A stretch of 64,000 nt of DNA from Oikopleura dioica (Eukaryota > Animalia > Chordata): assembly GCA_907165135.1 (NCBI GenBank), contig OU015566.1, positions 4,836,001 through 4,900,000 on the forward strand, written 5' to 3'. Position 1 is the first letter of the stretch. Each line of letters opens with the position of its first letter. Below are positions 1 to 64,000 of this stretch, piece by piece. The position numbers were made by a program, and so were the translations under genes. The notes below the pieces were generated by a model. The model was not told the DNA's origin. It saw only the letters and a program-made list of their open reading frames with translations, and searched no databases.

Positions 1-170
1 TCTAACGCTGTCAGTCAGTTATACAGTCATTCAATTACTATATACAAACTGTCCACTTACACACAAGCAAATACAACAATAGAACCGGAAACAGTCAGTT
101 GATCCCTTTTTACAGACCCAAGCAGCTCAGGCATCATCCAGACAGAACATTAAGAGAAGGACACTATCTA
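1..170 (+). repeat. 5' LTR (3' part only)
   Basis: Identical base for base to 10911-11080. Confidence 0.97.
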
Positions 171-173
171 TCT

Positions 174-212: not shown

Positions 213-2009
213 ATGAAGGAGAAAACCTTGCTGTCAAGCACAAGGATAGAAAATAACGAAAGTACCTACAACATAATTAATACAATAAAAATCAAACCAA
301 CGACAATTCCAGAAAGACACATTATCCATCTATGCAAAGCACTAAAAATTAAAAATGCGGATCAAAATGTGGAAGGATACAAAAAATACTTCAAGAAAAG
401 ATTTTCGTCCAATACGAAAATACAAGTTCATGCGATCGCGGCGGTGTTCACACTAAAGGAAATAAGTGAAGAAGAAACAGACGAGATTTACTGCGTTCTC
501 ACATGTCCAACAATCGACTGGTTGAAAAAGCATACAGAAGAGAAAATTTATGATTGGAGCGAAGTAGTGGAACACGCTAAAGAAAACGTATCAACTATAA
601 AAGCCTTTAATGAAGAGACCAAATGTGACTCAAGAGCCCTGAAAAACCACATGAACATTCTTTGGAACAAGCGTAAGCACCCAGAAGAAATAAGCAACTT
701 CAAATTTTTTGACGAAGAAGAAGAATATGATGAAGAACAAGAAATATCAGTTGTCCAAGAAGAAGACGAAGAAGGAGAAGAAATGAAGGTCGAAGCAGAA
801 GAAGAGCAAAACCAGTCATCAGCAAGTGGAAGAGTTAAAAAAGCGATAAATAAAATAGGAAGTAATTTGAAGAATCTAACTAGTATGCAACAATCAACAT
901 CAGACAGTGAAACAGACTATACAAGCGAAGAAAGCGATGATGACCCGTCAACCATCGAAGGAGAACAAGTAAATAACATCGACACAGAGGGAAATTCAAA
1001 AGGAAATATTAAAGATATTAGACTGACGAAATTCACTCAGAACGATGAGATTGATTACCTACCAAACTGGTACAAATCAAGCTTATTTCAAATACGACTT
1101 TACACTAAAGAAAAACTTGAAGAAGAAAGAATCAGTAGCATCCTTTTGTCAGCAATTGACAACAGAGGAGTTAAGGAAAGTCTCATATCACTCCTGACGG
1201 ATTACCAGGAAAAACATCACAAAATAACCCTGAAAAGGTTCAAAAGTGCTATCGACACCATAACAAGGAAAAGCTCTGAAGCACGAATGCGCGACATCGA
1301 AAATACAGTATTCAATCCACACAAAGACACGCCAAGAGGATTCTACAAGAACATGGAAATGAAATGCTTGAAACTATTCCCAGACGAAAGAGCCGTCAGA
1401 AGCTACGTTGATATGAACTTTAAGAAGAAAATTACGACAGATCGCGTATTTGCGCAACTCAGCTCAAACCTTTCCGGTGAACAACTGATCAAAAGCGCCG
1501 AAGACTTCCTGTCTCATTCAAACATCGACCAAGTGAACAATCTGATTGAAAGGCACAATAAAAATCGTAAAACCGGCAACCAATATTACAACAATCGACA
1601 GGAAGGAAAGAATTCCACACAAGACAGGAAGCCACACAATAGTTATCCGAATAATAGGGGCGGATATCAAGGAAGGAAGCCGGAAAGAAAGTTCTATGAC
1701 AACCAGAGGAAGTTCGACAACAACGGAGAGCAAAACCATAGCAACACGAGGAAATGGGAGAAGAAAGGTAGTCAGGGCTACAATGTACAGAATTACAACA
1801 AGCAAGAAAATAAAAAGGAGACTTTTGAGCCAAGAACTAAAAATCGAGGTTACCAAAACAACCGAAATCCGAGATACAACCAACAGCAACGTGAAATATC
1901 ATGCTATAACTGTGGAGGCAATCATCCTGTGAGGATCTGTCCAGCATTGAGACAATACAACCAGGACAACCATCGAGGAAACTCAAGAGATGACCGAAAC
2001 AGCTCCTAG
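213..2009 (+). CDS. gag: Gag polyprotein, 598 aa, with an acidic tract, an N/R/G-rich region and a C-terminal zinc knuckle
   Basis: First long ORF after the PBS; CYNCGGNHPVRIC knuckle near the C-terminus. Confidence 0.9.
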   Translation: MKEKTLLSSTRIENNESTYNIINTIKIKPTTIPERHIIHLCKALKIKNADQNVEGYKKYFKKRFSSNTKIQVHAIAAVFTLKEISEEETDEIYCVLTCPTIDWLKKHTEEKIYDWSEVVEHAKENVSTIKAFNEETKCDSRALKNHMNILWNKRKHPEEISNFKFFDEEEEYDEEQEISVVQEEDEEGEEMKVEAEEEQNQSSASGRVKKAINKIGSNLKNLTSMQQSTSDSETDYTSEESDDDPSTIEGEQVNNIDTEGNSKGNIKDIRLTKFTQNDEIDYLPNWYKSSLFQIRLYTKEKLEEERISSILLSAIDNRGVKESLISLLTDYQEKHHKITLKRFKSAIDTITRKSSEARMRDIENTVFNPHKDTPRGFYKNMEMKCLKLFPDERAVRSYVDMNFKKKITTDRVFAQLSSNLSGEQLIKSAEDFLSHSNIDQVNNLIERHNKNRKTGNQYYNNRQEGKNSTQDRKPHNSYPNNRGGYQGRKPERKFYDNQRKFDNNGEQNHSNTRKWEKKGSQGYNVQNYNKQENKKETFEPRTKNRGYQNNRNPRYNQQQREISCYNCGGNHPVRICPALRQYNQDNHRGNSRDDRNSS

Positions 2010-5000
2010 AAATCAAGGACTACCAGTTATCGGTATAATCATAAAACTTAATCAAAATGTAAATATAAATGTAAACGCTTTGCTTGACTCTGGATCATCA
2101 CTTAATTTAATAAAAAGAAGAAACATAGGTCACAGTTCAATAACAAACTCATGTGAAAAATTCATAATTAAAGGAGGAGATGGAAAAATCTTAGATAAAA
2201 TATCAGATCACATTACGCCTAATATTTATTTCCCGTGCTTGGATCTAGAAGTACCAGAGGCGAAACTATTTCTTACAGACGCCAACTTGAATTTCGACTG
2301 TATATTAGGTTACCCATTAATAAGGATGTTGGACATTAACTTTTCGAGAATAAATATTGAACTCAATCCACTAGAGATTAACGAGATAACAGAAATAGTA
2401 GAAATAGATACCATCGTAGTAAAAACCACTCGAAGAAAGAATAAGAACGAAATAACTAACAAGACCTCAGTAATCATAGGTCCAAAAGAAAGTTTTTCCC
2501 TGAAAATAAATGAAAACATAAAAGGTGAGGTACTTATCGACAAAAGCAAAGATATGGAAAAATGCGGAATACAATTCGATGTACTTAATGGAGAAAGCAA
2601 AACATTATATGGAATAAATGAAAGCTGGAAATCGATAATCATTGAAGAAAAAACTATTCTTGGAGAAATCGCAGAAAATAATTCAACATTGGAAACAATT
2701 AACACTCTCATAAGAGCAGACATGTTATCAAGACCGGAACTAGAACAACACTCAAGAGAATACGAGTCATGGAAGAGACAAAGGACAAATCTGATAAGGC
2801 AAAATAACATGGCAACACTTATAGAATCAAAAATTAGAGAAGCAGAAGTTGAAGAGGAAATAAAAGAAGAAATTCTGGAGAAAACGAGAAAATACCATCC
2901 TGTGTTCGCGAGACAAGAGAATGATGTGGGATTCAACAAAAACTATTTGATAAAGCTAGAATTCAATGAGAACATGGAAAATAGACGTCCAGAATCAAGA
3001 AGACCTTACAAATTCCCAAATAACGAGGAGTCCCAAATTATGGATTTTCTTGAGAAATTGGTAAAGAGCGGCGTACTCGAACACAGCAACAGTTCATGGA
3101 CATCACCATCGATGATCATAAAGAAAAAGAACAACAAATATCGATTGGTCACGAACTTCAGATTATGGCTAAACCCACTGTTAAACGTCCCTCAATGGCC
3201 GATACGAAGCATTCGAAGCCTATTTCATAGCATCGCGATAAATATTGGAGATCTTCAACGCGCGCACCCGAAATCACCAATCAAATTTATCAGTGTAGAT
3301 ATGAAGTCGGGTTACTTTACCCTTGCAATCGCTCCAGAAGACCGCAAATACACAGCATTTCCGACACCAAAGAAACTACTTCAATACAAAAAGTGCTCAC
3401 AAGGACTTTCAATAGCACCAGCATGCTTTAGTCAATTCATCCATGAAGTCTACGAGCTACCAAGACGATTTGAAAATGACTTTCGAATAGAAACTTATCT
3501 GGATGACGTCATTCTCATTGCAGTTGAAAAAACACTTGGATTAGCTGTGGAATGGCTTCTCAAAACAACTTTGGACAACGACATCATCTTGGATATACAC
3601 AAATGCAAATTTGGAACGAACGAAGTAGAATTCTTAGGATTTCGACTAAATAGTGAAGGAATAAAACCGATCAAATCAAAATACGAAGGACTTATCAAAT
3701 TAGAAACGCCGAAAACACAAAAAGATTTGCAGAAGTATTTGGGATCTGTGCAATTCTACGCAAGAGTCATACCAAGAGCAATGAATATTCTAAAACCCCT
3801 AATGGATGAAGTTTCGAACAAGAAATTCAAAGGATCTGAAAAAGTCAACACAGCGGTAGAAAAATTGAAACAAAACATCAGAAATTCAAATCAACTCTTT
3901 CATGCATTACCTCAAATAGGAGAATCATACATTATAGCCGTCGACAGTTCACTAACTGGCTATGGTTGCATGTACGGACTAGCAGAAGTCAATGACGAAG
4001 AAGTTAAAAAAATAAAGCCAATTGCTTATGGATCGGGAGCTTTTGCAAAACACTTACAACTAGACTCATCGAGGAACAGGGAAATGGTCGGACTGATGAA
4101 AGCACTTACGTACTTCAAAGATCTTATCGATACAAGGAGGAAACTTTACGCGTTTGTCGACCATAAATCACTTATGACATTGGAAAATAACGAGACAGCA
4201 AAGAAAGAACCGGTAACGAGAGTTCGCAAGGCACTCGCGTGCATTATGGAAATGCCAAATCTAGAAATTAGATATGTATCAGCAAAAAGCAGCCTTATCA
4301 ACTGCGTGGATGGACTTAGCAGAGCAATCACAAACACATCGACGTTCGAAGCAGCAGATATAACAAAATGGGCAAATGCGGTACTACCAGAAGAGAAGCT
4401 AAATAATATTAAAATACTGGAAGATGTCAAACTCAAACATCCAAGTACTATTTCATTCACGAAAGAAGAAATAAAAGCAGCACAGGAACAAGATGGATTC
4501 TGCATTGATGTACGCAGAAAATCAAATGGAAAACTCATATGGGAAATAGGAGAAGCCCAATACGAAAACATCGATGGAATATTACACAAAATCTTCCCAA
4601 ATAAGGAAACTAAAATCATTCTACCAAAAGAACAAGCATTCATAACACTTACAACATTTCACTACAGTTTTGGACACAGTAGTGAAAAACCACTTAACAA
4701 GTTGCTCACAAAAAACAAAATTCATGTCCATAAAAAATCAAAAATAATGAGGCAAATCGTTCAAAATTGTTTTATATGCCAAATGCGGAAAAGGCGAACG
4801 CCACAACTTTCGAGTAGAAAAACGATTCCATCAATTAGGCCATTTCAAGAAATTTGCATAGATATTATTGTTCTAAAAAGAAACTCGGACGTACCATTTG
4901 CGCTGAGTCTACTAGATAAATTCACGGAACTTTTCGATGCAATTCCAATACAAGATAAAACAACACATAGCGTTAAAAAGGCCATGCTTATCTTCATATT

Positions 5001-6135
5001 TCGTTATTGCCTAGGAGAAGGGACGAAAGTCCTAACGGACAATGGTCCAGAATTTCGAGCAGAATTTAGACAATTTTTGAAGCAACACCACATTTATCAT
5101 AGCACAATCACACCTTTAAATGCACCAGGAAATGCAGTAGAAAGAACTCACAAACCTTTTCGAAAACACATACTAGCAACACAGAAACTAGCAGAAGAAG
5201 AAGGATTCAATGACGTGGAGCATTTGAACCTTGCGATTGGAAGTCTAAACTCGAAGCCGAAAGAAAATCTCAAATGGGCAACACCTATGGAAATACTAAC
5301 AAACATCACGCCTCACCACATTCTATCGTTCGGAACAAATTTAGACTTGGAGAAAAAATATTCTGACTTGAGCGATGATGATCGGCAAAAAGCAAGAGAA
5401 ATATGGAACCGCAACTTAATGAAGTATCACATGGAAGTAGGCAATGACAAATATATAAAGTACATCGAAAATCAAGGAACTATCAACAAAGATGAAATAA
5501 AAAGAGGACAAGTCGTTGTCACCATGGACTACAGCCCGTTAGGACACGGTCAGAAGACAACTGGACCTTACTTTTGCCATGAAAATAATAGAGGATCTGT
5601 AAAGTTAGAAAATCTTCTAACTGGACAGAAGATCTTCAGAAATGAGAAAATGCTAAGACGACTAAAGCTGAATAAGGAAACAGAAGAGAAACTAAAAGAA
5701 GTTGGACTACTAAAAGATGAATTTGGAATACCATTACCAATCCAAAAGATAACAGAAGAAGATGAAAACAACAAAGAAGGATATACTCCGAAATTCCTCG
5801 AAATCGACTCAGAAACATCGGAAGACGAAGAAAATCACCATGGAAATCAGGAAGCAACTCCAGACAAGGACAATATTCAAGAAGTGAGACGAATGGAAAA
5901 GGAACAAACATCAGGAAGTACGACAAAAAAGTCAATGACAATGGAACAAGGAAGCGTAACTCAGCAACCAAACGGAAAAGCTAATAGAAACACCGAGTTA
6001 CAAGCAGACAGCAGCCAGTTTAAATCATTGATAGATATCATCAATCAGAAAAATAAAGAGGGAGAGAGACCTTATACAAGAGAACATCCAAGGAGAGGAA
6101 AAAGGCAGAGAAAGATAGTTAACTACAAACAATGA
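1990..6135 (+). CDS. pol: Pol polyprotein, 1381 aa: protease, reverse transcriptase, RNase H, integrase
   Basis: LLDSGSS; VDMKSGYF and YLDD; IAVDSS/REMVG/VDHKSL/DGLSR; HYSFGH..CFIC with IDII/TDNGPEF/VERTHK; GPYF module; no internal stop. Confidence 0.98.
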   Translation: MTETAPRNQGLPVIGIIIKLNQNVNINVNALLDSGSSLNLIKRRNIGHSSITNSCEKFIIKGGDGKILDKISDHITPNIYFPCLDLEVPEAKLFLTDANLNFDCILGYPLIRMLDINFSRINIELNPLEINEITEIVEIDTIVVKTTRRKNKNEITNKTSVIIGPKESFSLKINENIKGEVLIDKSKDMEKCGIQFDVLNGESKTLYGINESWKSIIIEEKTILGEIAENNSTLETINTLIRADMLSRPELEQHSREYESWKRQRTNLIRQNNMATLIESKIREAEVEEEIKEEILEKTRKYHPVFARQENDVGFNKNYLIKLEFNENMENRRPESRRPYKFPNNEESQIMDFLEKLVKSGVLEHSNSSWTSPSMIIKKKNNKYRLVTNFRLWLNPLLNVPQWPIRSIRSLFHSIAINIGDLQRAHPKSPIKFISVDMKSGYFTLAIAPEDRKYTAFPTPKKLLQYKKCSQGLSIAPACFSQFIHEVYELPRRFENDFRIETYLDDVILIAVEKTLGLAVEWLLKTTLDNDIILDIHKCKFGTNEVEFLGFRLNSEGIKPIKSKYEGLIKLETPKTQKDLQKYLGSVQFYARVIPRAMNILKPLMDEVSNKKFKGSEKVNTAVEKLKQNIRNSNQLFHALPQIGESYIIAVDSSLTGYGCMYGLAEVNDEEVKKIKPIAYGSGAFAKHLQLDSSRNREMVGLMKALTYFKDLIDTRRKLYAFVDHKSLMTLENNETAKKEPVTRVRKALACIMEMPNLEIRYVSAKSSLINCVDGLSRAITNTSTFEAADITKWANAVLPEEKLNNIKILEDVKLKHPSTISFTKEEIKAAQEQDGFCIDVRRKSNGKLIWEIGEAQYENIDGILHKIFPNKETKIILPKEQAFITLTTFHYSFGHSSEKPLNKLLTKNKIHVHKKSKIMRQIVQNCFICQMRKRRTPQLSSRKTIPSIRPFQEICIDIIVLKRNSDVPFALSLLDKFTELFDAIPIQDKTTHSVKKAMLIFIFRYCLGEGTKVLTDNGPEFRAEFRQFLKQHHIYHSTITPLNAPGNAVERTHKPFRKHILATQKLAEEEGFNDVEHLNLAIGSLNSKPKENLKWATPMEILTNITPHHILSFGTNLDLEKKYSDLSDDDRQKAREIWNRNLMKYHMEVGNDKYIKYIENQGTINKDEIKRGQVVVTMDYSPLGHGQKTTGPYFCHENNRGSVKLENLLTGQKIFRNEKMLRRLKLNKETEEKLKEVGLLKDEFGIPLPIQKITEEDENNKEGYTPKFLEIDSETSEDEENHHGNQEATPDKDNIQEVRRMEKEQTSGSTTKKSMTMEQGSVTQQPNGKANRNTELQADSSQFKSLIDIINQKNKEGERPYTREHPRRGKRQRKIVNYKQ

Positions 6136-8562
6136 AAATAATAATACTACAACTCATCTTATGTATTCCCATAAATGCATTTTATAATAACGCGACATAT
6201 ACCCTTGTAGAACCCATAGACAAAAATCTAATTATAGAAATTGACTCGAAAACTACAGAAGTAAATCTTCACATAGAGTTCCCACATGTATCAGAACCAG
6301 ACATTAAAAGCTGCCTCAAAGACCCTGAAGATTACAAATCAATCAACGTTCTCATAGCCCACGGTATCATAGACAGACTGCGAAACAACAAGAATTATTT
6401 TACGTGCGAAAACTACCACTGCAACGACCTTCACGCGAAGCACGAAGGACTTCAAGCAAAAGGACTTCAAAAATTTAACACATTCCTTGAAAATACAAAT
6501 TTACAACATGATGAAGAAGTTTACGGAAGAAGCAGCCCAAAACCAACAGCAGAACCACCAAAATTGCCAGAAATACAATACGAAGATGGCTCAATAGAAA
6601 CTGTCAAACAAGATGACAGAAATCCATTAATTTCACTACCCTACACACTCAGAGGAACTGAAGTAAATAATACGATAGAAACGATAATCACAAACTACTT
6701 ACCAGCAGGAAGGACTTACAATTTTGGTTACAGACTAATACGAAGAAATCTGAAATGGACACCATTCAACTCCGTCAACAATGTGACAACACACAACATC
6801 TTTAAGGAATATGTGTTGAACTCGGGAAAAAGCGATTTAGAAAAAATAGGACTTCAATGCAAACCAACAAATGTCTTTTGGATGGTAGTAAAAAACAAAA
6901 TGCTTATCGAAGAGGTGGGTATCCATATGAGTATGAACGACGAAGAAAGAGCCTGGCTCAACACTGAAGAAGGCCACGATTGGCTTGAAAACAATCTCGA
7001 GTATAATATCAAAGTAATTTACTTATCGGACGAAGAAAAAGAAGCAATGGAAGAAGACTACATAGATACGGCCATGTATGGGAAACACTGCACAGTAATG
7101 GCATATGACTACTTCAGCATTACATGCCCGCTTCCCCACGAACCAATGAGCAAACAGAACATGTACTTTGTAGTACATATAGAATTGTCAGAAGAAGCTT
7201 GCAATATTTTCCAGAATTATCTCCAAAAAGAAGGCCTCCCAACATATCAGCTCACTACCCATTGGGGATGGTATTCAATCGACCCTAAAGCTATAAATGC
7301 ACGAAGACGTGGCAAACGACAAGCAGTAGCAGTTGCATCAGGACTAATAGGAGGACTTATAATGGAACACTTATACCGAGGTTCACTTAAACAAAAAGAA
7401 GAGGAAGAAATTAGAAGTATGGAGAAAGACATAGAGCATATCAAAAGTAACACAATTGCCATCGAAACTGTCATCGCTGAAGAAACATGTAAGCTAGAAT
7501 CACAAATAATAGAATCAACAATTAGTCAAATAGTAAATGCAAATGTTGAAAAATTCTTAATGAGGATAAATCAGCTAATAGATATAAGCGACACAACAAT
7601 TCTGAACGCTTTTCTAAATAAATGTAAAAAATTGAATTCGGCAAAAAATTACATAACAACGAGCTGTTTATATCTATTTAACAAAAATCGAGTTCAATTA
7701 ATCGGAATTTTCAAAGATGCAGAAATAGCGTATAAATTAGTTTTTCGATACTTCATGCAGATTCCATTAGCTGAAAAAAAGTTCATTCCTACCAATTCGT
7801 ATGAACGTTGCACCGAAATTAGAGAATAATAATGATTATCTGATGCCGAAAATTCCAGAATTTTTATTTTTAAATCAAGAAATAATGGAAATAATCACAG
7901 CAAAGCACTGCTCCGAATCAACAAATATAATATCATGTAAGCTTACAAATTTAAACAATGATTCACATGAAAGAATTTGCGCTCGAGCTCTGATTAACTC
8001 CAAAAGTGATCTTCCAATAACATGCTACCCACTAACAATCAAAGGACAGCAAGACACTTGTTACATATCTCTTGCGAAAAGAGGTATATTAATCAGCACA
8101 CACAAAGAATCAAAGATCATTCTAAAAGAAAATGATATCGCAAATGAATTACAGCTGTTTAAAGGTCGAAATTTCATAAGCGCGGATAAAATAAGGGGCG
8201 AAGAAATTTTAGTAGACTGTTATCCCTCCTTATTCTTGCCCGCTAGCTTATTTGAGAAACAAAAACCTACCAACATTAATATCACAGTTACACCCGTTGA
8301 ATTTGGAAAAAACTTTTTTAACCAAGACGATCAAATTTTACCTTTATTTAATAACAAAGTCATGAACATGATACCATCTCAGCATCACTCAAAAATAAAA
8401 TATTATTTTGGAAAAATTGAAAAGGCTACTACTATCATCATTATACTTATCATTATATTAACCCTACTAAAAAACCTCCTGAAATGCTGTTTAACTTCTA
8501 CAAATAAACTCACAGGACTAGGAACTAGATCACGCTCTAGAAAAGCGAAGATAAAATTTTAA
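6132..8562 (+). CDS. env: Envelope / class I fusion glycoprotein, about 809 aa if one A is removed from the A7 run at 7774-7780; split into two ORFs as given
   Basis: Signal peptide MKIIILQLILCIPINA, furin site RRRGKR ending at 7319, fusion peptide QAVAVASGLIGGLIM, heptad repeat, Cys-rich region, N-glycosylation sequons, and a TM helix (TTIIIILIIILTLL) with a basic tail in the second ORF. Confidence 0.9.
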
Positions 8563-8884
8563 TACAGTCACACAAAGAAAGCAAAAGATGTTCCGATAAG
8601 AAGAACCACTATAACTACTTTCTTTGAAAAAAAAAAAAAAAAAGATGCCGAAAGGCCAAAATACTGTAACCCTGCTAACACACTGTAAATCGCCATCTAC
8701 TCATTAGTAACCACCAGAATAACTACAGTAATACCCTTGATATTTACCTGAAAATCAGAATTCTCCACAAATTTCACATTGCTTATCTCACGTTAATTAC
8801 AGTAATTAACACATTATTACAGTCGTACCTATCATGTCACTCATACTTAGCTATGCTTAATGCAAAAAAGTACTGTACCAAGAA

Positions 8885-9385
8885 TTACACTTCTCTAACC
8901 TCACACGAATTACAGTAACAACTACCTACCCATTCAATGCTTACCCATTCTAAATCAGTACTGTTAACCTTCAAATGCATAAATTTATTTTTCCTGCAAA
9001 TAACTGTAAAACACAAGTTCAAAAATATTCTATATTCTACGAAAAAAACAAAAGAAACAGAGGGCTTAGAAGTAGACTGAAAGCTGGCGAAACAAGTCAG
9101 AAGAAGCGACGTAATTACAGAATCCGCCAAACCATAGGGACAGACTCGATACCGGCGGGAATAGGACCCATCTTCGTTGTGCGTCAATACCTCTGCAATC
9201 ACAAAAGATTCGTGATAGTCATCCCAACAGAAGACTGCCTCCAAAAAGCAAATCACCTCATCCGCCGACGAGATGCCCCCAAGAATGGTAAATCCAGTGG
9301 CCCGGAACGAACTGCGAATATCGACCTCTTGCTGATTACGCGGGATCTCGAACTCGAAAAATTTGCGCAAAAGTTCTCTTTGCAT
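8885..9385 (-). CDS. Putative antisense accessory ORF of the element, 166 aa, orphan
   Basis: ATG start; balanced, globular-looking first ~90 aa; TATTTAAA about 66 nt upstream on the minus strand. Confidence 0.55.
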   Translation of the reverse strand: MQRELLRKFFEFEIPRNQQEVDIRSSFRATGFTILGGISSADEVICFLEAVFCWDDYHESFVIAEVLTHNEDGSYSRRYRVCPYGLADSVITSLLLTCFASFQSTSKPSVSFVFFVEYRIFLNLCFTVICRKNKFMHLKVNSTDLEWVSIEWVGSCYCNSCEVREV

Positions 9386-9451
9386 AATGGTTTCAAAATT
9401 TCAACAAATTTTTAAACTTCAAAATTTGATGAATCGACAGATTTTGATCAC

Positions 9452-9863
9452 TTTAAATACAGTCGGCGTTGCTAGGCGGACTGATGAGAGCGGCCACCGA
9501 GCAATGGAACAATGGAAACACCTGGAAACAGAACGGAAGAAGTCTTGACGATAAATGGAGAAGTCAACACCGGAACGGAACCAAAGCGGATGTCACCACC
9601 TGGAAACGGAGCAACGACGAACAATGGGAAACGGAAATCTGCGCGGCGACGACGAACAATGGAAAAAGGAAATCGACGCAACGACGATGGACAATTGAAG
9701 CGGAAATCGGAAATCGACGATAGCAACCAACTGCGGAAAAAGCGCGGCGATCAACAATCAACGAAGGAAGGGAAATCAAGAACAATTCAACAGGAAATCA
9801 CGAATGAAAAGAAGAACTACAGTCTGCCATGGAAACAAAGTCAATACAAGTATATATATATAA
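9452..9863. promoter_or_regulatory. Putative bidirectional internal promoter/enhancer between the two accessory ORFs
   Basis: Outward-facing TATA-like elements at both ends; repeated AACAATGG, CGGAAATC and CACCTGGAAAC motifs inside. Confidence 0.4.
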
Positions 9864-9929
9864 CGGTTGAAGCCACGATACTGCTCAGAAGAAGAAATCA
9901 GTTCAAAGTTTTTCAGAAATAACAAAAAG

Positions 9930-10442
9930 ATGAACAAGAGAAAGATTTACCCGAAAAACAGCCACTGGAACTCCCAAGTCACCAGTTCCAGAACTGATAA
10001 GGTATGGGGAAATTCCCCCAACGAACACTCTTGGAAATCAGAGAGTTGGGAAAAATGGGGAGATAGTGAGTGGAAGAAAGAAGATCAATTGGAACCAAAA
10101 GACACTCAACGATTTAAAAACATGCAATGGCAAATATTGCATGAAGAAGGCGATGCAATCGAAAGCGGCACAGTATTAGCGAAGGCAAATGCTGGAAAAC
10201 AACTGGAAGCACAACTCATCGCCACTTCTAGAACAAGAATCGAACAGCTAATTATTACATCGGACAATATCACGTACAAACACGACGAGAAAGATTATGT
10301 TATAATGGATTTGAAGAAGCGAATCGAGGAACTCACATCACAATTAGAGAATCAGCATATCGGCACACCTTGTGTCAGCTCGATTAACACACCAGTACAA
10401 GCACAACCAATACAACCACAACCACGAAGCTACAACATCTAA
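9930..10442 (+). CDS. Putative accessory ORF of the element, 170 aa from the ATG at 9930: Trp-rich N-terminus, coiled-coil C-terminus
   Basis: TATA-like run 9851-9863, TTTTTCAG acceptor 9909-9916, AATAAA at 10482; the track start at 9867 is a TTG. Confidence 0.65.
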   Translation: MNKRKIYPKNSHWNSQVTSSRTDKVWGNSPNEHSWKSESWEKWGDSEWKKEDQLEPKDTQRFKNMQWQILHEEGDAIESGTVLAKANAGKQLEAQLIATSRTRIEQLIITSDNITYKHDEKDYVIMDLKKRIEELTSQLENQHIGTPCVSSINTPVQAQPIQPQPRSYNI

Positions 10443-10790
10443 CGAGTCACAGCAAAAAGAAAACATCAAAAGAAAAAAGAAAATAAAAAAAGTATAAAAT
10501 TCATGAAAAAATCTAAGATAAAAATCTTTATAATCAATCAATGTAAAAATCAAAATCTACAAAAAACCGAAAAAACTACAAAAAAAAAAAAAAATTTTAT
10601 TCTACTATCGCTAAAAATTCTATGTACTGAAATGAAACTTGAAAACTGCGTGTACATATATTTACTCAGTCACTTATTACGCTACTAAAATGATGCAACA
10701 GCAGAAGCGAAGAAATGTATTGAAGAAATGAAGCAAAGAAGTAATGTTAAATACCACCCCTTCCTTCAGTTAAATTATGCTCTCAAAATT

Positions 10791-10807
10791 AGACAGGAGG
10801 GGAGGGA
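10791..10807 (+). other. Polypurine tract
   Basis: AGACAGGAGGGGAGGGA directly before the 3' LTR. Confidence 0.85.
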
Positions 10808-11080
10808 TACAGTAGTGTCCCAACTCTGATCTATTCTAGACTGTAACCAAGACAACATCTTACTGAATAACACATAGCAACCACCACTCTATATAAGACT
10901 CTGCCAACCATCTAACGCTGTCAGTCAGTTATACAGTCATTCAATTACTATATACAAACTGTCCACTTACACACAAGCAAATACAACAATAGAACCGGAA
11001 ACAGTCAGTTGATCCCTTTTTACAGACCCAAGCAGCTCAGGCATCATCCAGACAGAACATTAAGAGAAGGACACTATCTA
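10808..11080 (+). repeat. 3' LTR, about 273 bp, with TATA box TATATAA at 10890-10896
   Basis: Starts right after the PPT; imperfect terminal inverted repeat TACAGTAGTGTCC...GGACACTATCTA; identity with the 5' LTR ends at 11080/11081. Confidence 0.9.
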
Positions 11081-11099
11081 TGAAAAGAAGGAAATTTAC

Positions 11100-14000
11100 C
11101 GCATGAGTTCGTCTCAATCTCTCCGCCATGAGTTCGAGCGACATGGAGTCGAATCCTCTATTGGAGCAGTCGACCACTCGATCGACAGGGTCAAAGTCGC
11201 AAATCGGCTCATTTTCTGGTCGTGGAGGCTCAGTTGGTGGTTCAGTTGGTGGCTCGGTTGGTGGGCTTGTTGGCTCTTCGGGCTCTCCATAGATCTCGGA
11301 CAAATCGAGTCGATTCATGAGGTTATTGCAGTTGACCATTTTTCTGGTCTTGCCATCGAGTGGGAAGCCGTCGGCGATGAATGGCATGTCGGGAACTCTG
11401 TTCATCGTATCGCCGAGGGTGAGACACATGGTCGTGGCAAGGTCGATTTTTTTGACCTGGTCGAATTTGGCCTCGTCGTTCCAGAATTCTCGGTTTTCGT
11501 AGAACCATCGATCTAGAAAACAACCTTTTTCATCGCATGAAAGTTATTTTCTACCTTGAGTCTTGAGGGTTTTGAACTGCTTGCCAATGATGCACGCTCC
11601 AGTTGGTCCAATAGCAGCTCCATCGAGATGCTTTTCCATGAGGATACCGACGTAGAGATCGACTTCCCAATCTCGGTTTCGGTACTGGTCACGAACCAGG
11701 GCGTTCCACTCGGGTCTCATTCCCCTCCAGCCGCGGTACAAATCAGCGCATTCAGGATCTTCTTTGAACTCTAGAATTTAATTGATAAAAATTCAAAGGA
11801 TAAAGAGCGTTCTTACTTTTCAGGTACTTTTTGTGCGATTCCAATCCGTGATCTCGTCCTCTCGCAATATTAATCGCAAAAAGATCAATACCAAAGTCGA
11901 CTCCATGTGGCTTGAAAAGATTGTGAAGAACCGAATCACCAAAGGCAGGTCCAGTCGATAGGCCCTGAAGCGTAGCAGCACCTCGGCAAATGGCAGCTGG
12001 ACCTTGCTGGATGAGCACGTGGGGGTCGAAGAAGTTGTCCCGGATGTCGTCGGTGCTTTGGACTCGGTACTGGCCGTCTTTTGTAACGATGGTTTCTGGC
12101 TGCTGGGAGTGGCCGTATCTAGAAACGAAGAGAATGAAAGGGGGAAGAAAAGGCTCTAGTCACCGGAAAGCAGCAGTAGCGAATTCGTTGAAAATGACCG
12201 GCCCGGTTCGATCGTGATCTTGGTTGATTGGTCTGTTTGATGGTCTGAGCAGGGTTCGAAATCGGGCCGAAAAGTCGCTAGGCTAGGCTAGGCTAGGCAG
12301 AGCGAATTTAAAAAAAAGCTAGGCGAAAAAAGCTAGGCGAAATTTTTGTCACAGACTCTAGGCTAGGCTAGGCTAGGCGAATTCGCCTTAGGCGAATCTA
12401 GGCGAAAAAAGCGAAAACGCGATTCATATCAATTTTTTTAGGCGATTAGGCGAAAATTAGGCGAAAAGCGAAAATTAGGCGAAATTTTCGCCAGGATCTG
12501 CCTAGATTTCGCCTAGATCTGCCTAGATTTCGCCTAAATTCGCCTAATTTCTTCGCCTAGGCGAAATTCAAGGCGAATTTTCATTTTCGCCTTGTCGCCT
12601 AGCTTCGCCTAAGGCACCAGTATGAGACTAGGCTAGGCTAGGCTAGGCGAAATTTCAAGAGTCCTCGCCTAGCTAGGCAGCTAGGCGAATTCGCCTAGCC
12701 TAGCCTAGCCTAGCTTTTTAGGCGAATTCGCCTAGGCGATTTCGAACCCTGGGTCTGAGGGAACCATTGTCGAATTTGTCGAGGGAATTTCCAAAGAGCG
12801 CAGGGACCATTTCTTCGTAGACCATTTTTTGCATTATTGCAATGTTGAATTTTCGGGCTTCGTTGAAGACGAAGTCGGAATCGGACTGAAGGGATGGATC
12901 GGCATCGATGATTTCTTGGGCGAGGATGTTGTGGAGTCTTTTCTTTGGCTCAGAAATTTCGCTCTTTCGGACTTTTCCGTAATTTTTCTGGACCGTTCCT
13001 GTGGTACATGATATGCCAACTTCCAAGAATCGGGTTTTCAAGGACTCGATTATCGCCGGAAAACAGGGGATCATATCCCCGCTCGTTCAGGCCACTTGGA
13101 AGTCGGAACTTATCAGTGATAGGTTTGAAAGAGCCATCTTTCGCATTGATCTGCGCGATCGATGGGATGTAAATTCCATGAGTGTGGTCTTGAGTTTCCA
13201 GAAATGGTGATCCTGGAAGGCGGAGAGATCGAGCGTGAATTTCGGAGAAGCCGTAAATGTTTCCGGCTTGAATGGTTCCGGTTAGCTGGTTGATTTGCTC
13301 GGGGACCAGTTGTCCGTCTTTTTTAAGGCTTTTGATTTGTCGAGAAAGGATTAAGGGTCTCTCTCAGAGTTTTTTGAATAAAAAGCCCTTTCCTTGATCG
13401 CTAAGAGTGACAGCAGATCTAGTCACAAACATACAGGAGACGCCGGAAAAGACCGGATCAGAACCAGTCGACCACTTGAGACAATCGCTACTGTTCAGAG
13501 TACACCGACATCTTGTATCTTTGCTTCGATCAGGAGTTTGAAGAAGCGTGTGAGTGATGAACTGACCAGCGGTATTGAGAAAATGCGTCGTTTTGTCATT
13601 CGGACTTTGTGGGCACTTGCTTCGGAGATAGAGGGAAAGACCTCGCGGATTTGGAAGAGGTCTCTTGTCCGTGCCGCATTTTGGCGCTCCAGAGGCATCG
13701 CAGTAGGAAGCGGGGAGGAGTCGACCGTAGCCTTGGAGTGGCTGACCAGCGCCAGTTGGGTGGTTGCACTTTCCGTCGAAATCGGGGTATGGATTGTCTT
13801 TGCCAGGGATCAACATGAGCTTTCATGATAATTTTTGACCAATAAGGGACTTCTTTTGCCCTTTTTTTACAGATTGATAGAGTCGCTTACAGTCTGATTA
13901 GGCTAATTAATTTCTTATCAGCAAAAATACTCGACCCATGTCCTGACGCGCAGACAACTCGCTCGTTACTCGTTGAGTAGGGATCGGTTATGTTCTTCGC

Positions 14001-14450
14001 GATAGCAGCAATATCCGCAGCCGAAACAGAGCCACGCTCCCCTTCTAAGGAGCGCAACGTGTCCAGCGAAAACGACTCGACTTGGCGCAAACTCTTCGCG
14101 TACTGGTCCGTCAGGGGGGCAGTTCGGATCATGGAATGGGCATAGATGACGGTATTGAGGTCATCATCGGTCCGAGGTCGGTTACCTGAACATAGAACAT
14201 TGGAATTGATTTATTTATAAATTATTATAATAAAAATATTTATAAATTAATAATTAATTAATTATTTAAATAATTTATCAAATAATTAAAATTTATAATA
14301 TATAAAATTTATAAATTAATTATAAAATTAAAATAATTCCATTTTTATAAAATAAATTTATTAATTTTTGGAATAAATTGCATATTTTTTAAGGACAAAA
14401 AATATTTTCTTACCTAGGGCGGAAGCCAACAACGAAAAACTCAGTTTCAT
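11100..14450 (-). CDS. Secreted animal haem peroxidase, multi-exon; interrupted by an exonic MITE and by the LTR element; 3' exons would lie before the window
   Basis: Signal exon MKLSFSLLASAL; YPDFDGKCNH, RLLPASYCD, GQFITHT, EQINQLT, GDNRVLEN, EFATAAFRYGH, RGRDHG, DLYVG, DRWFYEN. Confidence 0.92.
12250..12751. mobile_element. hAT-type MITE, 502 bp, inside a peroxidase exon
   Basis: Perfect 15-bp TIR CAGGGTTCGAAATCG, 8-bp TSD GGTCTGAG (12242-12249 and 12752-12759), internal TAGGC/TAGGCGAA arrays. Confidence 0.93.
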
Positions 14451-46398: not shown

Positions 46399-47630
46399 AT
46401 GTCGAATGAAGGGGGAAAAGAAATTGACTATTTTTACAACACGAAAGATGAAAGAGAGCAAACGCTATCAGAACTTCGATCAGGTAATAAAAGAGATAAA
46501 AAATACGAATTATCGAATTATTAAAATCCTTATATAAAACTCTTGTAGAAATGATGATGCTGCGCGCAGTGGTCTCTGATCTGAGCAAAAAATTCGAGGA
46601 TGAGAAACAATACCGACTTCGAGCTGATTACGAAAAGAAGCGGGAGGCTGAGTTCGCTCGGCAGCAACTTGAAAAGGAGTTTCAAACGAAGATGACGATT
46701 CGGGAAGACGACTTGAAGTTTGAGCACCAATCAGTGGAGAATTCTTTGCGGGAGGAAATAAGAGAATTAAGGAATCAAAATGAAGAAAGGATGGTGAATT
46801 TTGAGCGGAAAATTCACGAGCTTGAAAGAAATTTGCTCACTAAAATGGAAGTCAAAGAAAGAGTTATTTCAAAGCAACAGCAAGAAATAAACAACCTGAA
46901 ATCGAAAAATAAGCAATTCGAAAAGAAAGTGTCGCGGTTGAAAAATCAAAATGATGAGTTGGAAAGAACAGTGAGAAGGTATAACGACAGAACAAGGATA
47001 AACGAAGTTGAAATAGAAGAGAGGCGAGAATATGATGATAAGCAGTTTCAAGAGCTGAAAAAACAATTTGACGAAATGAAAAATCAATCAAAAAAGAGTG
47101 AAACTCGACTGAAAAGAAACGAGGGAGGATGCATTCTCCGAAATTTCGTTGTCGACCTTCCGCCGGAGAAATACCATTCTCGCGAAGACGTGATTCCTTT
47201 TCTGAGCGCTCTTGACGCGGGCTTAGCTGACTTGAAACTCAAAATGCTTTTTACGAATCCGTTGAAGGCGAAATACTCGGATGATTATTTTAAAGTTGTT
47301 CAAGAAGGTGATTTTTTTTATTTTCCAAAATTATATCATGACAAGGCTGCTGAAATTCTTTGGAAAAGTGATTTTGGCTTTCGGACATATATTGGTGAAC
47401 CAAGTTCGACAAATGGCGAATTGCAAATTCAATTCGTTATTTGTGTTCTTCCCGGAATAAAAATACAAATCGAAAGCAATATGGATAAAAAGTACAAAAC
47501 AAAGTCAGATTCAGAAAAAAGAACAATTGAATCGAAGAAATTTCATTATTTCGCATTTATAATTTTCATTTCAAAAGAAAACTTTGACCGTCTCATTATC
47601 ACTTTCAAAGTCTCTTCTCAATCAAAATAG
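46399..47630 (+). CDS. Coiled-coil protein with an orphan C-terminal domain, paralogue 1, 2 exons
   Basis: Exon 1 MSNEGGKEIDYFYN..LRS plus the 359-aa ORF; duplicated at 49609-50605. Confidence 0.78.
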
Positions 47631-53849: not shown

Positions 53850-54545
53850 AAGAATTCATCGGCGAGTAGAAGAAAAAAAAATTTTTTGAAAAATTTTTCA
53901 AAAATTAGGGTTAAAGTGGGGGTGTCTCTTGAGCAAAAAATCTCAAAACCCTTATTTTCTCTCGACAATCAAATAGTCTCTACGGATAGATTAGACCCTT
54001 TAGAATTCATCGGCGACCAAAAAACTAAGGGTCACTATCTTAGAAAAAAGTTTCTTGTTCATTGAAAATATGCGATTTTCGCAAAAATTCATATTTTTCA
54101 TCATTTTTGGCCGAAATTTTTACAAAAGCTGCATAAACTCAAAATTTTTTATTGATAATGATTCAAAAACTATCGATTAACATTGCTTAGCAAGCAAATT
54201 TCATTTTAAAATTGTTTTTGGGCGAAATCACCCGCTTGAAAATTCTTGGCAAGCGCTCATTTTAAATTTTTTCAGGCTTTGAGTGGACCAATCAAAAAAA
54301 GCCAGAGACCAAAAAGTCATATTTTTTGATGAAGAATTCAAAAATGTGCTTGAAATTATCGGACTCGAAAAATTTTCATATTGACGACTCCCCCCTTAAG
54401 ACTGTTGGTTTCTTATAAGTATGAAGTTGACAAAAATCTGAACACCGAGAAGAATAACCTTAGTGCAACAGGGTACAGGTTCAGATAAGACATAAGGGTA
54501 TATAAGACCCTTTAACCAAAAATTGACATAGCAGTTTTCTCTTGA

Positions 54546-55901
54546 ATGAACCCTGAAAAGGATATCGCTGAAGATGTAGTCAGGCGATTCGAAGTAATAA
54601 AGAAGAACATGTTCGATGAATACCGAAAGAAAAAGAAACGAAAGAAGAGAAACACTTCCGATATCATCGACGACATTTTCTTCTTTGATACAAAGTGGAC
54701 TTATCGAATCGATTCGACGAAAGAATACGATGATCTGAAAAGCAAGTTAATAAAGGACGCCCTCCCAGATGACATAGAAATACCAGCGTACTTGGAACTT
54801 CTAGAATCCTGCTCTGATTGTGCGGTTCTCGATGACTCACCAGATCCGGAAATGGTGGAAGAAATTCTCTCCAACTTCGATCCCGACAAGCCGGATTTCT
54901 CAACCCTTGGTGACCCAATGGTTGACTCTCTAACCGGAGCAATGATGGACGTAGACCTCTGCACTGCCGTCAATCGGCAATTGATTCTCACGCTTTATGC
55001 AAAAGGAACTGCGCCGTTTCAGGGAAAAGTGCTCGGAATTCCGGCGGAATTGAGACCAATCGTAGCAGTTTTAATCAATCAGGACTCGCCCTACAATGTC
55101 ACCGTGACCATTTTGAACACGGATATTTGGAAAGAAAGCGGCCAGGAGTTCTTTTTCGTGAACTTGAAAGACTCTGGCGGGAAAGAAGGGAGCGTGTATG
55201 TAAAAGTCTCAATGGATAGTTGCAACAAAGCTGCGGAAACAGACGCCGATTTGTCCCTCCGAGCGAATCTCAAAGTCGTCCAGGCCAGTTTGATAATCAA
55301 AAACTTGAAAAAAGAAGAACATGAAAGTGCAGTTCAAATTTCCTCCGAGCAAATTTACGCGGTCCTCAACGGAATCAACGCTCTCAAAAGTGTCGAATTC
55401 GAAACCTTTCGATTCGCGGATCGATCTTCTTGCGCTCCCCTAAGCTTTCCTCTCGATGGAGTGAGCCTCAAATCTGATGGCTGCACCATTCGAAGAGACA
55501 ATCATCTCCAAGCAAAGACGGAAGTTGACCATCGTTTTCGAGATAAACTCGACGAACCTTACGAACCAACAGTTTTCGTCCGCGAGTTTGGGAACATCTG
55601 GTTCGATTGCTTCACCGACGAATGCACGATTCTCGACTTTATCCTTACCATGTATGACACGACCATGACCTTCGATGGGCTGAGCTTCGATGACAGTCTT
55701 TTCAAAGGACTAAATTTGGCAAGTGAACGAACCGCACTGCTTCTCAACAAGGAGAATCAAGTGAGAGCAGCAAGGCCCACGAGACCGATTGACTTCGCTC
55801 AAGCGCAGAATATTGGGAATGTGCTCATTTCACTGAGTGTGCTTTACTACTTGTATTGTGTTTACAAATTGGTTTTTCAGGAATCAAGGTTGAATCTGTG
55901 A
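54546..55901 (+). CDS. Hypothetical 451-aa protein with a polybasic (furin-like) site and a C-terminal TM helix
   Basis: Long ORF; KRKKR near the N-terminus; VLISLSVLYYLYCVYKLVF at the end. Confidence 0.8.
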   Translation: MNPEKDIAEDVVRRFEVIKKNMFDEYRKKKKRKKRNTSDIIDDIFFFDTKWTYRIDSTKEYDDLKSKLIKDALPDDIEIPAYLELLESCSDCAVLDDSPDPEMVEEILSNFDPDKPDFSTLGDPMVDSLTGAMMDVDLCTAVNRQLILTLYAKGTAPFQGKVLGIPAELRPIVAVLINQDSPYNVTVTILNTDIWKESGQEFFFVNLKDSGGKEGSVYVKVSMDSCNKAAETDADLSLRANLKVVQASLIIKNLKKEEHESAVQISSEQIYAVLNGINALKSVEFETFRFADRSSCAPLSFPLDGVSLKSDGCTIRRDNHLQAKTEVDHRFRDKLDEPYEPTVFVREFGNIWFDCFTDECTILDFILTMYDTTMTFDGLSFDDSLFKGLNLASERTALLLNKENQVRAARPTRPIDFAQAQNIGNVLISLSVLYYLYCVYKLVFQESRLNL

Positions 55902-62940: not shown

Positions 62941-64000
62941 TTATTTTTTCAGCGATTCGTAGAAAGCGATGGTTTCAGCAGAAAGCTCTTCCTTCCACCC
63001 CTTTGATTTTCCGGAGCGGAAGACAACGGCTTCTTCGAATTTGATTCCTAGCTTTTCGGCTTCTTTTTCTCGATGTTCTCGTGCTTTTTAATGTCGCTCT
63101 AGAAAAAATTGATGAGTCATCATACATGACTATTTCAAATAGTCTATTTGGGTCATAAGTTATGAGTCATAACTTATGAGTCATAAGACTTATGAGTCAT
63201 AAGACTTATGAGTCATAACTTATGAGTCATAAGTTATGACTCAGAACGCCTCTGAGCTTGGCTCGGTAATCTGTGTTGAAAACCTGAGTCAGGGTCCGAA
63301 ACTCATTTTAGCTCTTTTAGGCCCTGACTCAGGTTTTTCGCACAATTGCCGATCTCAGCCTCTGACTTAGGGTTCGAGAAAAACTCACCATTTCGACGAT
63401 TTTCGCCAAGTCGGCATTTTCGATTTCGAGAAATTTCAACAATCGGGAAATTTCTTTCGGTTTGTCAGCAACCACTTCTTTAAATTTGAAAACTAGAAAG
63501 AAATTTTCAACCTCATCCCTTTTTTTCGACTTACATTCAATTTTCAACTCAGGATGTTCTTTTGCGAATGCTTTCCATTGCTGATTGTATTCTTCTGGCG
63601 TTCCAAAGACTTGTTTTCCTTCGAACATGAATCTGGCAAACGTCTGGAGGTCGTCATAGATTCCGTGCTTTTTCATGTACGGTTCCATGAAGGGGAGTTT
63701 CTTGAAGAAATGAAAAGCAGAAACGACTACAGCGGGGGTGTCGCGCTCGATGAAGACGATTTTGCCCTTGTGGCCGAGCGGGAAGTTGCCAGGGTTGACA
63801 TGGCAGTGAGTCGTGTGGACCAGACCCTTGTGTTCGCGAATGGCGGCGAGTTGGTCGTCAAGAGCAGCGACGTTTGGGCGGAATTCCATCGGATGGAAGG
63901 TGTGCTAAATAGGTGGAATGAAAGAAAAATGATGAAGGAATACCTTGTCTTTTGCCACGAGCGTTTCCAATCGGGTGATTCCGATCGCGTCCAAAATCGA
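62941..64000 (-). CDS. Cytosolic sulfotransferase (SULT family); 5' end beyond the window
   Basis: HTTHCH, KIVFIERDTPAVVVSAFHF (3'-PSB-like), EISRLLKFLEI, FRSGKSKGWK (RKG..G.WK-like). Confidence 0.85.
63150..63240. repeat. Palindromic minisatellite TTATGAGTCATAA; similar ATATGAGTCATAT array at about 34010-34092
   Basis: Tandem copies visible. Confidence 0.85.

Follow-up and report, generated by a model that had tools for sequence, protein, structure and literature searches.

The 64,000-nucleotide (nt) stretch of Oikopleura dioica DNA analysed here (assembly GCA_907165135.1, contig OU015566.1, positions 4,836,001 to 4,900,000 of the forward strand; referred to as the window, with its first letter as position 1) begins inside the long terminal repeat (LTR) at the 5' end of an env-bearing LTR retroelement of the Ty3/Gypsy type. 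Our subject is this element and, within it, the 2.2 kb that follow its env-like gene, where two open reading frames (ORFs), herein accM and accP, point away from each other on opposite strands. The element is laid out as follows.

1-171, plus strand: 3' part of the 5' LTR, 100% identical to 10911-11081
Starting 3 nt past the end of the 5' LTR, plus strand: primer-binding-site-like sequence that begins with TGG
213-2009, plus strand: gag-like ORF of 598 amino acids, intact, assigned from its position upstream of pol, which it overlaps
1990-6135, plus strand: pol ORF of 1381 amino acids, intact, with a protease motif and the Pfam domains RVT_1, RT_RNaseH and rve
6132-8562, plus strand: env-like region in two overlapping frames with one change of frame, and a stop at 8562
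10795-10807, plus strand: polypurine tract of 13 purines, directly abutting the start of the LTR
10808-11081, plus strand: 3' LTR, 274 nt long; its terminal inverted repeats are imperfect, and it contains TATATAA (at 10890) and TACAGT three times

Direct LTRs together with an adjacent primer-binding site and a polypurine tract, as looked for in a Ty3/Gypsy LTR element, are all in place, and four plus-strand reading frames occupy 213-8562. The domains of the pol product follow the Ty3/Gypsy order of protease (D[TS]G at residue 33), reverse transcriptase (RVT_1, residues 377-553; YLDD is present), RNase H (618-749) and integrase (rve, 950-1044). Its best solved relative was Ty3 Gag-Pol (E=3.6e-40), and foamy virus and other retroviral reverse transcriptases matched it far more weakly (E 1e-17 to 1e-6); judged by these match scores, the reverse transcriptase is closer to Ty3/Gypsy than to Retroviridae. 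The gag-like ORF had no Pfam match, and a search of it for a zinc knuckle found none. The env-like region, which also had no Pfam match and whose upstream piece had no database homologue, begins with a hydrophobic, signal-like N-terminus and contains a single furin-like site, the motif F-x-G and six cysteines shortly upstream of a C-terminal transmembrane segment with a basic tail; the motif N-[L/V]-G was absent anywhere in it. Since the visible 171 nt of the two LTRs are identical and both gag and pol are open, the insertion looks young, and the post-env module of such a young, otherwise intact element is therefore not the decay debris of an old copy. The element is known here from one copy, and the window holds no second copy or fragment of the post-env cassette and nothing else similar to it.

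Between the env-like stop at 8562 and the polypurine tract lie 2,228 bases, which agrees with the 2.2-kb gap reported in a first-pass annotation of this DNA. That annotation had also placed back-to-back ATG ORFs on the two strands of the gap, each with a TATA-like element about 66 nt ahead of its ATG, and both the ORFs and the motifs were found where it had put them. The cassette contains the following features.

8563-9010: G-poor segment (7-11% G) with a TACAGT array in both orientations, a run of 17 A and a 41-nt imperfect direct repeat
8885-9385, minus strand (reads 9385-8885): accM, antisense ATG ORF of 166 amino acids
8975-9415, plus strand: sense ORF of 146 amino acids, basic (net charge +19), in the exact antisense codon register of accM
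About 9086-9400: balanced sub-segment with a GC content of 0.44-0.47, high CpG and a weaker A skew than the rest of the element
9400-9470: AT-rich spacer carrying the minus-strand TATA-like motif
9459-9452, minus strand: TATA-like motif TATTTAAA, 66 nt upstream of the accM ATG
9480-9840: central block rich in purines, poor in T (9-11%) and denser in CpG than any other part of the element
9512-9922, plus strand: sense ORF of 136 amino acids, very basic, spanning the T-poor repeat block
9851-9863, plus strand: TATA-like motif TATATATATATAA, of the form (TA)n-TATATAA, preceding the accP ATG by 66 nt
9930-10442, plus strand: accP, sense ATG ORF of 170 amino acids, its frame open from 9864
10443-10600, plus strand: A-rich tract (59-61% A) with a run of 15 A and, at 10482, the sole plus-strand AATAAA of 8563-11081
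10601-10794: AT-rich stretch leading up to the polypurine tract

The arrangement is close to a mirror image. accM and accP stand head to head with 544 nt between them, both leaders from TATA-like motif to ATG measure exactly 66 nt and are free of any ATG, and the two motifs face outward from the most CpG-dense, repeat-bearing segment of the element. The TATATAA core ahead of accP recurs in the TATA-like motif of the LTR at 10890. With 9-11 TATA-like 8-mers per strand in the 11-kb element, each ORF had roughly a 5% chance of finding one at a suitable distance. Elsewhere in the window, TATATAA at 46531 precedes the ATG of the long host ORF 46551-47630 by 20 nt, and TATATAA at 54499 precedes that of the long host ORF 54546-55901 by 47 nt, both ORFs being without a Pfam match; the 47-nt spacing suggests that short leaders, similar to the 66-nt leaders of the cassette, are used in this genome.

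As the region is stop-poor, ORF lengths were compared with shuffles that preserve dinucleotides inside blocks of 100-250 nt. An ATG ORF as long as accP was reached by 0.65-0.95% of these shuffles, one as long as accM by 3.2-3.9%, and both together by 0.025-0.05%. The two ORFs are thus longer than 96-99% of the shuffles, and both occupy the position by which additional ORFs (aORFs) of LTR retrotransposons are recognised, between the last canonical gene and the 3' LTR. A second, stop-density-aware score (the S-statistic) rates an open stretch by the stop triplets in its other two frames. By this measure accM scored 12.5, a value reached by 0.7-0.8% of shuffles: its own frame holds no stop triplet and its off frames hold 11 and 13, and within its last 66 codons the corresponding counts are 0 against 6 and 10. 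For accP the counts are 0 in frame and 6 and 8 off frame, and the way its bases are distributed over the codon positions resembles gag. Taken together, these comparisons make a moderate case: either ORF stands out, at about the 1% level, in just one of the two tests, and the pair together is rare.

Which strand would be coding at accM is less simple, as the sense ORF at 8975-9415 occupies the same triplets. The 137 codons common to the two contain no TTA, CTA or TCA, the triplets that are stops on the opposite strand, in either reading. Such an absence was found in none of 19 equal chunks of the element's genes versus one of seven host chunks; given the amino acids, its probability is 0.03-0.1 with host codon usage and <1e-4 with that of the element. 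The shared segment therefore departs from the codon choice of the element's genes whichever strand is read. The long open tail of accM, which crosses a stop-rich zone, favours the minus orientation, and we mildly prefer accM, with the plus ORF as its possible shadow, over the plus reading, in which accM would be only the shadow of a sense gene. The second sense ORF, 9512-9922, is probably a product of composition alone, since the tandem repeat that it spans has a period of 35 nt, which is not a multiple of three, and since its off-frame stops number only 3-4. Were the three plus-strand ORFs of the cassette the remnants of one larger sense gene, that gene would be broken up by at least two stops and one change of frame.

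The post-env stretch as a whole is clearly segmented by base composition and repeats, under a strong skew of A over T. The hexamer TACAGT, which has 33 matches in the window versus 11.7 expected for the whole 64 kb, is concentrated in the G-poor segment (9 of the 33); it also occurs in the cassette at 9458 and 9818 and in the LTR at 10808, 10840 and 10932, and it makes up the six bases that come directly after the env stop as well as the six that open the LTR. The central block carries ten copies of GGAAA in 250 nt and 2.8 copies of the 35-nt tandem repeat (9614-9709), and owing to its composition it is open in several frames on both strands. These observations support the view that the post-env stretch is a structured module and not filler. 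Most of the cassette is bracketed by two pure A-runs, of 17 at 8627-8643 and of 15 at 10580-10594, which would mimic poly-A tails in oligo-dT-primed data.

Three other candidate features were rejected. A structured RNA element was ruled out, as the post-env stretch had no match in Rfam and its non-ORF parts folded no more stably than shuffles (z = -0.8 for 8563-9010, +1.4 for 9480-9840 and +1.75 for 10443-10790). A degenerate internal LTR was ruled out by local alignment, which found no LTR-like sequence in the cassette (all z-scores <1). The AATAAA that follows the accP stop was set aside as a signal, being expected by chance in a tract of about 60% A.

The cassette ORFs are similar neither to gag, pol or env nor to one another. 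A Pfam search of all cassette ORFs at E up to 10 returned only an irrelevant 13.7-bit match, a word-indexed protein search found no relatives of accM or accP, a full HMMER search of accM against 1.84 billion representative proteins gave no match, and a PDB sequence search with four cassette ORFs gave no credible match. The accM product would open with some 100 residues of balanced composition, followed by a hydrophobic stretch at residues 112-130 and a tail rich in Cys. In accP the N-terminal half is predicted to be disordered and is followed by a small beta-sheet plus helix; in its weak single-sequence AlphaFold2 (AF2) model, with a predicted local distance difference test score (pLDDT) of 55, a five-strand sheet and helix at residues 100-140 reach 72-78. 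The Foldseek comparison that the first-pass annotation had proposed for both proteins was run on these models and returned no significant match in PDB or BFVD, with nothing below E=0.01; the best match of accM, a Pur-alpha repeat, had E=0.28 and was not significant. For the sense ORF 8975-9415, a CARD or death-fold was considered on the strength of a match at E=0.059 to one RIPK2 CARD chain and was ruled out, as 13 of the aligned residues lay on the tag linker of the construct, CARD-only chains gave E of about 1 and no Pfam family appeared at E up to 10. As a control on the database, the element's ORFs and the neighbouring host ORFs were absent from the protein collection as exact sequences. 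Since the element's own env-like piece also went without a match, blank protein searches say little about sister copies.

On this evidence, the 2.2 kb after env are most likely an accessory module of a young env-bearing Ty3/Gypsy-type element, akin to the long 3' internal regions with additional ORFs described in other LTR retrotransposons. What the analysis shows are the ORFs, the motifs, their symmetry and their excess over shuffles; promoter activity, transcripts, translation and a function for the cassette are inferred. The central core, some 390 nt in length, with abundant CpG, purines and GGAAA motifs and with the 35-nt tandem repeats, may act as an internal two-way promoter or enhancer. 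Rightward, it would give rise to a subgenomic sense mRNA for accP that would end at or before the normal 3' end of the element. Leftward, it would produce an antisense transcript that might encode accM, might act as antisense RNA on the 3' portions of the env and genomic RNAs, or might do both. We propose this two-way promoter because the layout is mirror-imaged, because TATATAA is shared with the LTR (10890) and because there are precedents in the internal promoters of Tor elements (PMC4402516) and in Grande (PMC7264820). As both proteins are orphans, we can give neither a nameable role, and any products would be described simply as element-encoded accessory products. That at least one of accM and accP is a real, independently expressed gene we put at a little short of an even chance; that both are real is rather unlikely. 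Besides the shuffles and the mirror-image layout, we count in favour of real genes the gag-like base usage of accP over codon positions, the sheet and helix that its C-terminal half forms at pLDDT 72-78 in a model made from one sequence, and the young, otherwise intact look of the element.

Several points weigh against reading these ORFs as genes. The stop-density-aware score of accP, 8.0, was reached by 18% of shuffles, and the six frames of 8400-10900 hold 25 open stretches of at least 50 codons. Codon-usage likelihoods, with either the element's genes or nearby host ORFs as the training set, did not set any cassette ORF apart from composition-matched stop-free shuffles (p 0.07-0.7). accM shares its triplet register with an equally open sense ORF of 146 amino acids, and codon scores slightly favour that sense reading over accM, a preference that is mainly an effect of strand composition. 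The single-sequence AF2 model of accM has a pLDDT of 41, its four strands and helix lying at about 50, and both accM and accP are without a homologue, family or fold match. The TATA-like motifs were chosen after the fact in AT-rich DNA, and the evidence comes from one copy.

We also considered whether the stretch could instead be non-coding, a 3' region of the env and genomic RNAs that acts in cis, as DNA or RNA, in the role of an enhancer, an internal promoter or a control at the transcript level, with the ORFs as by-products of a skewed composition or relics of earlier coding sequence. The skew of A over T, the T-poor and G-poor sub-segments and the many open stretches in all six frames are what such a region would show, as is a tandem repeat whose 35-nt period is not a multiple of three. 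The presence of TACAGT both after env and in the LTR, a place where one expects regulatory sites, and the GGAAA cluster fit it too, and so do the non-significant codon-usage tests and the S-statistic of accP (p 0.18). Tor elements, moreover, have been reported with a 3' untranslated region (3'UTR) and internal regulatory determinants (PMC4402516). Against it, only 0.025-0.05% of shuffles match both ORFs together, and accM stays open through a stop-rich zone; nor was a stable RNA structure predicted or an Rfam match found for the region. We regard a non-coding region as the main rival, possible though doubtful.

The codon choice of the balanced sub-segment raises another explanation, in which a fragment of a host gene, mainly about 9086-9400, was carried along by transduction and has no role for the element. 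This sub-segment stands apart within the element by a GC content of 0.44-0.47, high CpG and a weaker A skew, and its 137 codons free of TTA, CTA and TCA fit the codon choice of the host and not that of the element. Against such a passenger, its minus reading has no relative among the 1.84 billion representative proteins or in the word-indexed search, its plus reading has no Pfam match or credible PDB match, and nothing similar occurs elsewhere in the 64-kb window; we consider it improbable. A nested insertion, or the remnant of another mobile element or older LTR, might be suggested by the A-runs near both ends of the core (8627-8643 and 10580-10594) and by the LTR-opening TACAGT directly after the env stop, but the cassette has no LTR-like sequence (alignment z-scores all <1), no bracketing terminal repeats, no transposase or reverse-transcriptase signal and no second copy in the window, which leaves this highly unlikely.

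The host DNA next to the element contains exons of an animal haem peroxidase, which adjoin the 3' LTR on the minus strand (11037-14132; Pfam profile parts 1-134, 232-285 and 352-432). A minus-strand ORF from 11429 runs out of host DNA into the LTR and then meets a stop, so that the insertion may lie inside or right behind the last coding exon of the peroxidase gene. Within this gene, CTAGG-type short repeats at 12277-12714 include perfect 31-nt inverted arms (12358-12388 and 12683-12713) and resemble a foldback element or a miniature inverted-repeat transposable element. Just upstream of the peroxidase exons, 14209-14350 is AT-rich and of low complexity, with numerous palindromes and TATAAAT repeats. 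Far from the element, a sulfotransferase-like exon is found on the minus strand at 63332-63889 (Pfam Sulfotransfer_1, E=3.5e-08).

An accessory module after env would have counterparts among known elements. Plants and fungi have Ty3/Gypsy elements with sense and antisense aORFs between pol or env and the 3' LTR; these aORFs are typically orphans, and some are equipped with a promoter of their own. Examples are gene23 of maize Grande, rice RIRE2, Silene Retand and Botrytis Boty (PMC7264820). Grande gene23 is antisense and is transcribed from its own promoter (PMC7264820), and Retand carries tandem repeats inside its 3' region (PMC7264820, PMC11963269). Like these, the present element has a long stretch from its last canonical gene to the 3' LTR with orphan ORFs in sense and antisense; unlike them, it has an animal host, an env-like gene and two head-to-head ORFs around one core. 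The plant aORFs are defined by conservation across copies, for which the yardstick is retention in all or most copies of a family at the level of gag and pol, whereas here one copy is likened to them by its layout. Among animals, bdelloid rotifer LTR retrotransposons have diverse third ORFs (PMC5408684). They are comparable as animal LTR elements of modular make-up that acquired ORFs beyond gag and pol, but domains can be recognised in their third ORFs (env-like, GDSL esterase, DEDDy exonuclease, dUTPase), and accM and accP have none.

In Oikopleura dioica itself, the env-bearing elements Tor3b and Tor4b have an internal promoter, Penv, that drives env, and their env is followed by a 3'UTR (PMC4402516). 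Ahead of a C-terminal transmembrane domain, their Env proteins carry seven cysteines together with the motifs F-x-G and N-[L/V]-G, the latter with aromatic residues on its flanks (PMC4402516). The Tor features of a Ty3/Gypsy-like gag-pol-env order, young copies with near-identical LTRs, internal transcription units and a 3'UTR after env (PMC4402516) all invite comparison with the present element. It differs from them in that no accessory ORFs are described in PMC4402516, and in that F-x-G is present here while N-[L/V]-G is not.

The first-pass annotation had set these ORFs against a description of Ty3/Gypsy elements as gag-pol(-env). This premise is too narrow, as both sense and antisense additional ORFs are documented, and since such ORFs in 3' regions are already known, to call the cassette an undescribed system was an overstatement (PMC7264820, PMC5408684). 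Its reading of the element as a "complex" metavirus with a regulatory or anti-defence module is partly supported, in so far as the module is structured, with a long ORF on each strand around a core rich in CpG and repeats, and in so far as the pair is rare in shuffles; it falters on the orphan status of both proteins and on codon usage, which is not significant. Complex retroviruses do share with this element the extra frames 3' of env and the notion that expression, also from the antisense strand, need not depend on the 5' LTR (PMC4402516, PMC7264820). In contrast to theirs, however, its pol is nearest to Ty3 (E=3.6e-40), with retroviral reverse transcriptases far weaker, and accM and accP have no sequence or fold match to solved or viral-library proteins that would relate them to retroviral accessory proteins. 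A "complex" metavirus in the full sense would have an origin separate from that of complex retroviruses and a two-way internal promoter driving two lineage-specific proteins, one of which would be encoded antisense to the genomic RNA; we consider this unlikely.

If the cassette is real, its novelty would lie in the host group, in the presence of an env-like gene and in the head-to-head pairing of two ORFs about a single core; it would not amount to a new category. Should one of the ORFs be conserved and expressed, it would extend the additional-ORF phenomenon, documented mainly in plants and fungi, to an env-bearing animal element, which would then be a compact case for studying the gain of accessory genes and internal promoters outside Retroviridae. 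An antisense transcription unit within the element, if true, would bear on its interplay with host small-RNA defences. If the ORFs are not conserved, the region would still be a clearly organised regulatory 3' segment with a hexamer array in common with the LTR.

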